Below the pieces are notes generated by a model that was not told the DNA's origin, ran no database searches, and saw only the letters and a program-made list of their open reading frames with translations. The position numbers and the translations under genes were made by a program. From NCBI RefSeq assembly GCF_001194135.2, contig NC_068989.1, forward strand, positions 378,457-442,456: DNA of 64,000 nucleotides, written 5' to 3'. The DNA is from Octopus bimaculoides (Eukaryota). Every line of letters starts with the position of its first letter. The stretch's first letter is position 1. Below, piece after piece: positions 33,301 through 36,300 of the stretch.

Positions 33301-36300
33301 CTTCCATGGTATTGGGATGGTTTGACAAGAACTGACCAGGCCGAAGCCTGCACCAGACTTCTGCAACTGTTCTGGCAGGATTTTTACAGCTGGATGCCCT
33401 TCCTATAATGCCAACCACTCAGCAGAGCAGATGAATAAAAGTGATTAATGAAGATGGTTGAGCGGTTCACTCTAACAAAGAATGAGAAAACAAAATTCAA
33501 AATTCACAAAAATTCAAACTTACTCGGCCAACGGTCTTGCTTGCCGCTTTCCCCTTCTTCAATAACTGCTGTAAGAAGAGAAAATGTGAATATCTGAAAC
33601 AAGCATGACATTATAAGAAATAACACAAAAGATAAAAGACGTTTAAATATTACAATCAATGGAAAATGTTAGACTTGAGATATCTTGCCTTTCCTAAATG
33701 TTATTTCAGTATAATATTATACATTGAAGGACAGTCAATCTATTTCAGCTTATTTCATCTGTCTAATTACATCAATATGGTCTGGCAGTCAGACTCTTCA
33801 TCTGCTCCAATCAAAGCCAAATCAAAACCACTGACGTGACCGATGACAGTGCCGCCTGATTGGCACTTGTGCCTGTGGAACATTAAAAGCACATCTGAGC
33901 ATGATCGTTGCCAGGGCCATGGATTGGCTCCCATGCCAGTGGCACATAAAAAGCACCATTCGAGCGTGATTGTTACCATCGTCACCTTACTGGCACATGT
34001 GCCAGTGGCACATGAAAAACAACGTTCGAGCGTGGTCATTGCCAATGCTGCCAGACTGGCTCCCATGCAGGTAGCACGTAAAAACACCTTTTGAGCATGG
34101 TCGTTGTCAGAACCGCCCGACTGGCCCTTATGCAATCCACTCTCAGAGTGGTTGGCAGTGAGCCTGGTGCAGCCGCCCAGCTTGCCAGTTCTCAGTCAAA
34201 CCGTCCAACCCATGCCAACATGGAAAGCGGACATTAAATGATGATGAAATATAAACATGCACACAAACACAAAACTTGTGACTGATGACTAAAGATGAAG
34301 GTGGTTGAGAGTTGAACTCCTACAAGAAATGAGAAAAAAAAATTTGAAAAAATTCACAGAAAGTGCACTTACGTGGCCAACGGCCGTGCCTGCTGCTTTC
34401 CCCTTCGCCTTCAATAACTGTTGGAGGAAGAAAATGTTAAGATATGACACAAGAGTAACATTATAAGAAAATAAATCAATTCGTTTCTATTACAACCAAT
34501 GTAAAATACTGGTCTTGAAAGATCTTGGTTTCAATATGAATGTTTTTATTTGCTACTTTAATATTTCATTATTTATATAGTCTATCACTGTATTTGCTAC
34601 TTGTATGTTTGTAAATGTTGATACAATTAAGGCTGTAGGGTTTTGTGGATGATATGCATACGACTTCCAGGTTGGACATACAGGATGTGTTCGAAGTATT
34701 CGGTGAATGTCATTGAGTAAGAGGTGTTTAGGTTGTTGGAGTTGATCATATTCTGTTTTCATTTTGACTTCTTCTGATAATGTGTTTCAGAAGAACCTCC
34801 CTCCTAAAAATGATGTAGATTGTATCCAAACATCTCTTAATTATAAGAGCAGAGACTCAAAAATGGATAAGAAGTACCCACAATGCGATAATTACAACTG
34901 CAGGGTTGGGAGTGTGAGAGAGAAGGAAGAACATTGTAGAGCTTCTGATTTTAGGGTTTTGCATACAACTCATTTAAGAATGATTCTAAACATTCTGAAA
35001 ATGTGACTTAAGATAACAGGCAAGAAAATGTGAAAACAACACTCGACCTACCTTCCGGTATAACCATGTCATGGAAAAAAGGATTATTTGGTATTCCTTC
35101 AACTAGAAATTATAACAAAAAAATATTGTTTCAACACAAAAATCAGACAATTCCAATGCTATCACTAATCTCTGTATCAAAGAATAAAAAAATTAGTCTT
35201 ACACAAACATTGTAACCACCTTTCTTCTCATTATGACTGATGTGAATTTTATCTTATTAATTGTGCTAAGAAGAAAAGTTATTGGTTTTTAAGGTAGAAG
35301 GCATTTAAGCAATTAATTATAAAAAATTTTAAAAAACCATAGGAGACACCTCTAGAACAGATGCCAATGTCTATGTGCTTTGAAATTTATTTCAAAGTCA
35401 ATACTGATTTTCATCCTTTCATAGAGTTAGAGTAGAACTAGCACAAAGTAGTCAATTGAATAGCTTACAACTTCATTGATTTTCACCAAAATTAGTTTCC
35501 CATTTATAAGAGAAATTATTATGGAAAAAAAAAAAAAATTACTAATCAAATTATTTCAGCTTTGCTTAATTGTTTAATGGTGGCACATGAAAAGCACCTT
35601 TTGAGTGTTTGAAGGGTATCCAGCTGTAGAAACCATGCCAAATCAGAATGGAGTCTGGTGCAGCCTTCCAGCCCTGGTCAAACTGTCCAACCCATGCAAA
35701 CATGGACAATGGATGTTAAATGATGACGATGATGATTATCACATTTCTAATGAAATCCACTCTTTGTTTCAATTAATTTGGGAAATAATGAAGTATTTAG
35801 TAAAATAACTTTTGTCACAATTAAGCTGGTGTTTGGAATATAAATTAGCATAAAATTGAAATAGGTTTTAATTTAAATCACTTGAGAAAAGTAAGTTTGT
35901 ATGATGGAAGCAGTGGTGGCCTCAGGTGAGTAAGTATCGAAAAAGTCGAATTGCAACAATGAAATGCCAATTGGTTTACATTTGTTAGGAAGATTGTTAG
36001 AAGGAATCTCAGTTATCAACTGAAGTGATTAGACTCCAAGAAATTAGCACAATTGTTTCTTGTTTCTGTGTAAAAAACAGAACTGAAAGGTCAATCAACT
36101 GATTGAACTAATTCTTTCAAAAGAAATTAATACCCCAAGCAAGAACATAACCATTTTCAAAGCTATTTTATCAATAATTACTAAGTGATACAAGAAAAAT
36201 CCAAATGAATATCACATACCAGGGTCTTCATAAATTGGTGGCATTTTTGGTGGAGGCAATGTTGGCTTCACAGTAGTAGTAGTAGTAGTAGTAGTAGTCG

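Follow-up and report, generated by a model that had tools for sequence, protein, structure and literature searches.

The window, that is, the whole stretch of 64,000 nucleotides of Octopus bimaculoides DNA analyzed here, carries a gene on the minus strand in which PKD repeats, a REJ domain, a GPS motif and a PLAT-like exon follow one another in this order. Its minus-strand open segments encode the PKD repeats from ~61 to 42 kb and the REJ-domain exons from 42 to ~18 kb, and Pfam matches were obtained for the PKD repeats (E=2e-22) and the REJ domain (E=9e-47, profile positions 3-389 of 452) as well as for the GPS motif. The transmembrane region of the gene lies outside the window, and an assembly gap (N run at 2572-2965) separates the GPS exon from the PLAT-like exon. 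Exon 36215-36622 drew 11 matches in a full HMMER scan. Proteins named PKD1L1 head the list (Tubulanus polymorphus, XP_074659507; Lingula anatina, XP_023931767; Acanthaster planci), and a Lottia gigantea model comes next; the PKD1L1 assignment of these relatives is the name given in the source records, without phylogeny. On sequence grounds, the gene is polycystin-1-like and of the PKD1L1 type. The features of the locus are listed in Table 1.

Table 1. Features of the duplicated micro-exons and of their host gene, in window coordinates and in the order of transcription.
Feature	Position	Strand	Description
Upstream REJ-domain exon	36220..36604	-	ends with a Thr-rich run and ..PPIYEDP; donor CCTG/GTATGT, last base 36220, phase 1; 5' end approximate
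Duplicated unit B	34295..34527	-	micro-exon flanked by intron, ~110 nt upstream and ~80 nt downstream
Micro-exon copy B (upstream in gene)	34373..34417	-	45 nt, phase 1 to 1; acceptor ..TTTTCTTCCTCCAACAG, donor GTAAGT
SINE-like repeat between copies	33837..34254	.	related copy at 14680-15151
Duplicated unit A	33448..33687	-	homologue of unit B; identity 74% overall, 36/42 in the exon and 72-77% in the introns
Micro-exon copy A (downstream in gene)	33524..33568	-	45 nt or 42 nt (33524-33565); phase 1 to 1; donor GTAAGT
SINE-like interspersed repeat beside unit A	33272..33428	.	similar to 45333-45478 and elsewhere
Downstream REJ-domain exon	31023..31208	-	186 nt, phase 1 to 1; acceptor TTTTTTTTACAG/AT
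GPS motif	4432-4211	-	Pfam GPS, E=4.5e-5
PLAT-like exon	1730-1413	-	no Pfam match as a 57-residue fragment

Two micro-exons lie between two REJ-domain exons. The upstream one of these flanking exons terminates with ..CCA ATT TAT GAA GAC CCT G, followed by GTATGT, and the downstream one begins with AT TCA ATT (31208) directly after TTTTTTTTACAG. Within the upstream exon, an (ACN)n run at 36265-36330 on the minus strand encodes ~20 consecutive threonines and is mucin-like; it is shorter in a related species (P0001). The micro-exons are placed after this threonine run (..QQPTTTT...), where a linker of low complexity interrupts the REJ domain; the domain then resumes. Read on the minus strand, copy B consists of ..TTTTCTTCCTCCAACAG on the acceptor side, the exon TTATTGAAGGCGAAGGGGAAAGCAGCAGGCACGGCCGTTGGCCAC and then GTAAGT, and copy A consists of ..TTCTTACAGCAG on the acceptor side, the exon TTATTGAAGAAGGGGAAAGCGGCAAGCAAGACCGTTGGCCGA and then GTAAGT. 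Thus, the canonical splice sites that had been claimed for both copies are present as a pyrimidine tract, a CAG acceptor and an identical GTAAGT donor. Among the phase-1, open, AG..GT candidates of the 5-kb interval, copies A and B have the best signals, and they are the only ones of the pyrimidine-tract, phase-1, open candidates of this interval to combine CAG with GTAAGT. The interval contains two further minus-strand segments that are not homologous to the pair: 31688-31720 is a 33-nt phase-1 open segment whose acceptor is TAG, with 17/20 pyrimidines in the tract and GTAAGT as the donor, and 35052-35102 is a 51-nt phase-1 open AG..GT segment with a GTAGGT donor. They are possible extra linker micro-exons or products of chance.

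In copy B, the AG of the acceptor lies at 34419-34418, and the sole AG-bounded exon at this place is 34373-34417, which is 45 nt long. The original prediction had assigned 44 nt to this upstream copy, with GGG instead of GGGG. In the assembly, however, the run is four bases long in both copies, as CCCC on the plus strand at 34400-34403 (copy B) and at 33551-33554 (copy A), and the boundary chosen earlier, 34416, is preceded by GT, not AG, and drops one base of the exon. The frameshift is a one-base counting slip. The 15-residue peptide for which an extra G was held to be necessary is already encoded by the assembly as it stands, and the TAA in the exon 31023-31208, which inclusion of the copy was supposed to reach, arises only with the miscounted 44-nt version. 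NMD or a secreted PKD-repeat ectodomain, the outcomes proposed on this basis, depend on a frameshift that is absent. A homopolymer assembly error had been offered as another explanation and finds no place in a 45-nt exon with CCCC at 34400-34403. The comparison of ccc with cccc at 34400-34402, which had been put forward as a check, yields four C in the assembly and, insofar as the assembly stands for the reads, refutes the poison-exon reading and favours a normal or a mutually exclusive exon. A decaying duplicate is likewise at odds with the data, which revealed no lost splice site, stop or frame-breaking indel; the lone exonic indel is 3 nt long.

The idea that copy B has 44 nt and shifts the frame to the TAA in 31023-31208, so that it would be a poison exon subject to NMD, a source of a truncated secreted ectodomain or the mark of a homopolymer assembly error, therefore retains practically no probability. 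Its sole basis is the earlier count, and a 44-nt exon would indeed reach the TAA; against it stand the assembled CCCC and the position of the 44-nt start inside the exon, behind a GT. The pair resembles poison (NMD-coupled) cassette exons in that a short cassette-like exon with strong splice sites is set in a long intron. The defining feature of that class is nevertheless missing, as inclusion brings neither a premature stop nor a frameshift: the lengths of both copies (45 nt; 42 or 45 nt) are multiples of three, without stops.

All four introns bounding the flanking exons and the micro-exons are phase 1. Scripted splicing of the six combinations (skipping of both copies, B, A42, A45, B+A42 and B+A45) revealed that each is stop-free from ..PPIYEDP into SIVDSNF.., and the direct joining of 36220 to 31208 likewise stays in frame (..YEDP-D-SIVDS..). 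The two lengths of copy A reflect its acceptor, CAGCAG at 33571-33566 on the minus strand, directly before TTATTG, which conforms to the NAGNAG pattern with both versions in frame. The same place in copy B reads CAACAG and contains a single acceptor. Hence, a single A/G difference between copy A and copy B creates a second in-frame acceptor in copy A, whose use would insert one further codon (Ala or Pro before Val). In comparison with known NAGNAG tandem acceptors, the two acceptors of copy A are 3 nt apart, and the choice between them could include or omit one codon (..P-A-V.. versus ..P-V..), whereas copy B has no such choice.

Regarding the origin of the pair, blastn of 32800-34800 against the 64-kb window aligned 33448-33687 with 34295-34527 as a direct duplication (74% identity, 246 columns, E=2e-35) with a period of ~849 bp between units A and B. 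This bears out the earlier proposal of a tandem micro-exon duplication that includes the introns; the intron strings quoted in its support were found in both copies, and the 3-nt insertion ascribed to the upstream copy is seen as GGC in copy B. Neither blastn nor a repeat search revealed a third copy of the duplicated unit in the 64 kb, and pattern searches of the whole window allowing up to 3 mismatches returned just copies A and B. As the copies are 24% divergent, they represent neither a haplotype nor an assembly duplication. The tandem duplication of the micro-exon is real and old. Homology between the units stops ~120 nt upstream and ~80 nt downstream of the micro-exon. The SINE-like repeat 33837-34254 accounts for ~418 of the 849 bp of spacing, so that the inferred duplication unit is at least 430 bp (849 minus the 418-bp repeat). 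The remaining ~190 nt of this unit are unalignable and the alignable homology is confined to a 240-bp core, beyond which no homology permits the exact duplication unit to be defined.

Repeats have accumulated in and around the pair. The SINE-like repeat between the copies contains tandem units of 64-66 nt (TRF period 66, 1.9 copies), and fragments of its family (motif ..GGATTTTACAGCTGGATGCCCTTCC..) occur in many introns of the window. The other SINE-like element, 33272-33428, is bracketed by 34-nt direct repeats (33238-33271 and 33429-33462, 94% identical), which are similar to a target-site duplication and unusually long for one; these flanking repeats indicate that the element was inserted after the exon duplication. 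A search of Rfam over 32800-35000 gave no match. Elsewhere in the introns of the gene, two minus-strand ORFs are found, one at 21995-22580, a putative remnant of a mariner/Mos1-type transposase, and one at ~7200-10400, a putative remnant of a reverse transcriptase (LINE-type).

Tandem exon duplication is found in ~10% of animal genes according to a 2002 survey, as cited in PMC9013439. The present pair shares with the known cases the adjacency of homologous exons that agree in phase and nearly in length, a homologous flanking intron, and a spacing that was later widened by a repeat. It differs in the very small size of the exon (42-45 nt), which encodes part of a low-complexity linker rather than a folded segment. 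The pair is an ordinary member of this well-known class.

The counterpart linkers of Lottia, Lingula and Tubulanus were compared with the octopus micro-exons. These linkers exceed 100 residues, are rich in Gly, Ser, Glu and Arg and contain recurring x-EG-x-S..R motifs, and MAFFT puts the copy B peptide under MNEGQSGRGSYGR (Lottia), MQEGSEDSDRHKR (Lingula) and MSEGSSASRGRRG (Tubulanus). The similarity is marginal, with best p values of 0.01-0.03 that are uncorrected and obtained by composition-preserving shuffles of low-complexity sequence. When the Lottia protein was mapped exactly to its locus, its linker was resolved into four GT-AG phase-1 exons of 60, 114, 111 and 60 nt between phase-1-bounded equivalents of the flanking exons, the Lottia gene model itself being a computational prediction. 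With this four-exon linker, at least one other mollusc has short symmetric exons in series at the same place. The Tubulanus linker sits on larger exons. Taken together, the PKD1L1 REJ linkers (Lottia LOTGIDRAFT_173469, Lingula XP_023931767 and Tubulanus XP_074659507) are like that of the octopus in their position after a Thr/Pro-rich run, in their Gly/Ser/Glu/Arg composition and in the x-EG-x-S..R motif, and the Lottia linker additionally in its series of short phase-1 exons between matching phase-1 boundaries. In contrast, the octopus linker has 29-30 residues against >100, there is no one-to-one conservation of exon boundaries, and the resemblance is only marginally above that of composition-matched shuffled sequences.

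Further relatives provided genomic sequence. The protein search with the upstream exon found two genomic ORF fragments only, P0001 (Logan contigs) and P0002 (ENA contig L005). Over 1.4 kb including intron, the genomic contigs of the related species (P0001, L001-L004) and the window share 73.5% identity, which is close to the divergence between the two copies; the P0001 Logan contigs are at most 1.5 kb long and end 1.3 kb before copy B. Contig L005 comes from a more distant relative, whose neighbouring exon is 52% identical; in the 10 kb downstream of its orthologous exon, neither blastn nor tblastn detected a micro-exon copy or the next exon. No annotated or transcript-derived cephalopod protein was found by the upstream-exon searches or with the ORF across copy A. 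The spliced 350-aa query gave no match, which is a weak negative, as even P0001, which shares an identical stretch of 39 residues, was missed. JGI metagenome contigs, scanned with a degenerate pattern, yielded 0 matches.

The most probable explanation, which we hold with reasonable confidence, is that a symmetric micro-exon of the REJ linker was duplicated in tandem long ago, with both copies intact and used as ordinary exons and with no frameshift. The duplication copied a short phase 1-to-1 micro-exon together with ~100 nt of intron per side. Both copies are intact in their pyrimidine tract, CAG acceptor, purine-rich (GAA/GGA) body, GTAAGT donor and multiple-of-three length, so that the spliceosome can take neither, either or both of them with the frame unchanged. 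Each copy included would extend the disordered linker behind the mucin-like threonine run by an acidic/Gly/Ser/Arg unit of 14-15 residues that ends in RWP. The copies are presumably used as ordinary exons, either both included or as independent cassettes, giving a two-unit repeat.

Sequence maintenance bears on whether the copies are exons at all. The exon is 36/42 (85.7%) identical between the copies and the introns are 71.7% (upstream) and 76.8% (downstream) identical, a difference that is not significant (Fisher p=0.11), and the overall JC distance is 0.29 substitutions per site. Four of the five codon differences are non-synonymous, with a nonsyn/syn ratio of ~1, so that the peptide bears no mark of purifying selection; this lack of visible constraint fits a disordered linker. 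In a neutral simulation at 24% divergence, the AG, the GT, a multiple-of-three length and an open frame were all kept in 11% of the trials, and these features together with the full GTAAGT donor in 3.6%. Homology that persists only around the micro-exon suggests, without proving it, that the exon and the nearby intron may be under constraint.

It is unlikely, though worth weighing, that the gene leaves one or both copies unused as pseudo-exons, be they dead duplicates or chance AG..GT segments, and splices 36220 straight to 31208. Such a splice stays in frame, the protein searches turned up no expression evidence, and the nonsyn/syn ratio, the exon-versus-intron contrast and the 11% neutral retention of the minimal features are what unused copies could produce. 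However, the full GTAAGT, the CAG, the pyrimidine tract and the open frame were kept after ~0.29 substitutions per site, with an indel of 3 nt, and homology survives around the exon alone. Furthermore, the orthologs encode a linker with similar motifs and short phase-1 exons exactly at this position, and without the micro-exons the octopus gene would have no linker after the threonine run.

If the two copies are real exons, as in the preferred reading, their joint or alternative use has to be considered. Mutual exclusivity can be enforced by frame incompatibility, steric hindrance, U2/U12 incompatibility or competing RNA structures (PMC5740500; PMC9013439), and steric hindrance applies when the distance from donor to branch point between the exons is below ~50 nt (PMC5740500). 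Exactly one copy per transcript would swap ..SSRHGRWP for ..GKQDRWP, an arrangement that we regard as distinctly improbable. Tandem duplicates of similar length and the same phase are the usual origin of such exons (PMC9013439; PMC5740500), and the flanking intron blocks are conserved in both copies; in their tandem origin, phase, length and conserved nearby intron blocks the copies indeed resemble mutually exclusive clusters such as Dscam and ATE1 7a/7b (PMC7797038, PMC6071210, PMC5740500). Unlike the exons of those clusters, both copies are divisible by three, so that joint inclusion and joint skipping stay in frame, and the intron between them (804-807 nt) is far over the <50-nt steric limit (PMC5740500). 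Both introns are GT-AG with donors of the same U2 type (GTAAGT), which leaves no U2/U12 incompatibility. As for the RNA pairing predicted from this one sequence, the four intron flanks reach at best -25.8 to -27.3 kcal/mol in duplexes with the 5-kb pre-mRNA, which equals the values of shuffled flanks. In addition, the ortholog linkers hold several such motifs in series, not one. Ordinary inclusion, of both copies or as independent cassettes, ranks above mutual exclusivity because no testable exclusivity mechanism enforces the latter.

A more speculative function can be attached to copy B. The linkers of P0003 (Tubulanus), P0014/P0004 (Lingula) and P0008 contain polybasic stretches (RRRRKR, RHKR, RRRR and RSRR) where, or close to where, RHGR of copy B is aligned; the Lottia linker is without a polybasic stretch. 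The ortholog stretches and RHGR of copy B could represent a convertase-type site or mere low-complexity composition. Copies A and B might then be independently regulated cassettes that tune the length and charge of the REJ linker, in which copy B alone would add an R-x-x-R (RHGR) like the polybasic stretches of the nemertean and brachiopod PKD1L1 (RRRRKR, RHKR and RRRR), and splicing would decide on a convertase-type site in the ectodomain. We give this proposal only a slim chance.

For the annotation of this PKD1L1-type gene, 34373-34417 (45 nt) and 33524-33568/33565 are to be modelled as in-frame phase-1 exons, and an assembly error, an NMD isoform or a truncated secreted ectodomain is not to be expected. 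The significance of the pair beyond annotation is slight. It provides one more case in which a linker is lengthened by tandem duplication of a symmetric micro-exon, and short phase-1 exons in series at this place in the REJ domain are now seen in a gastropod and in this cephalopod genome.
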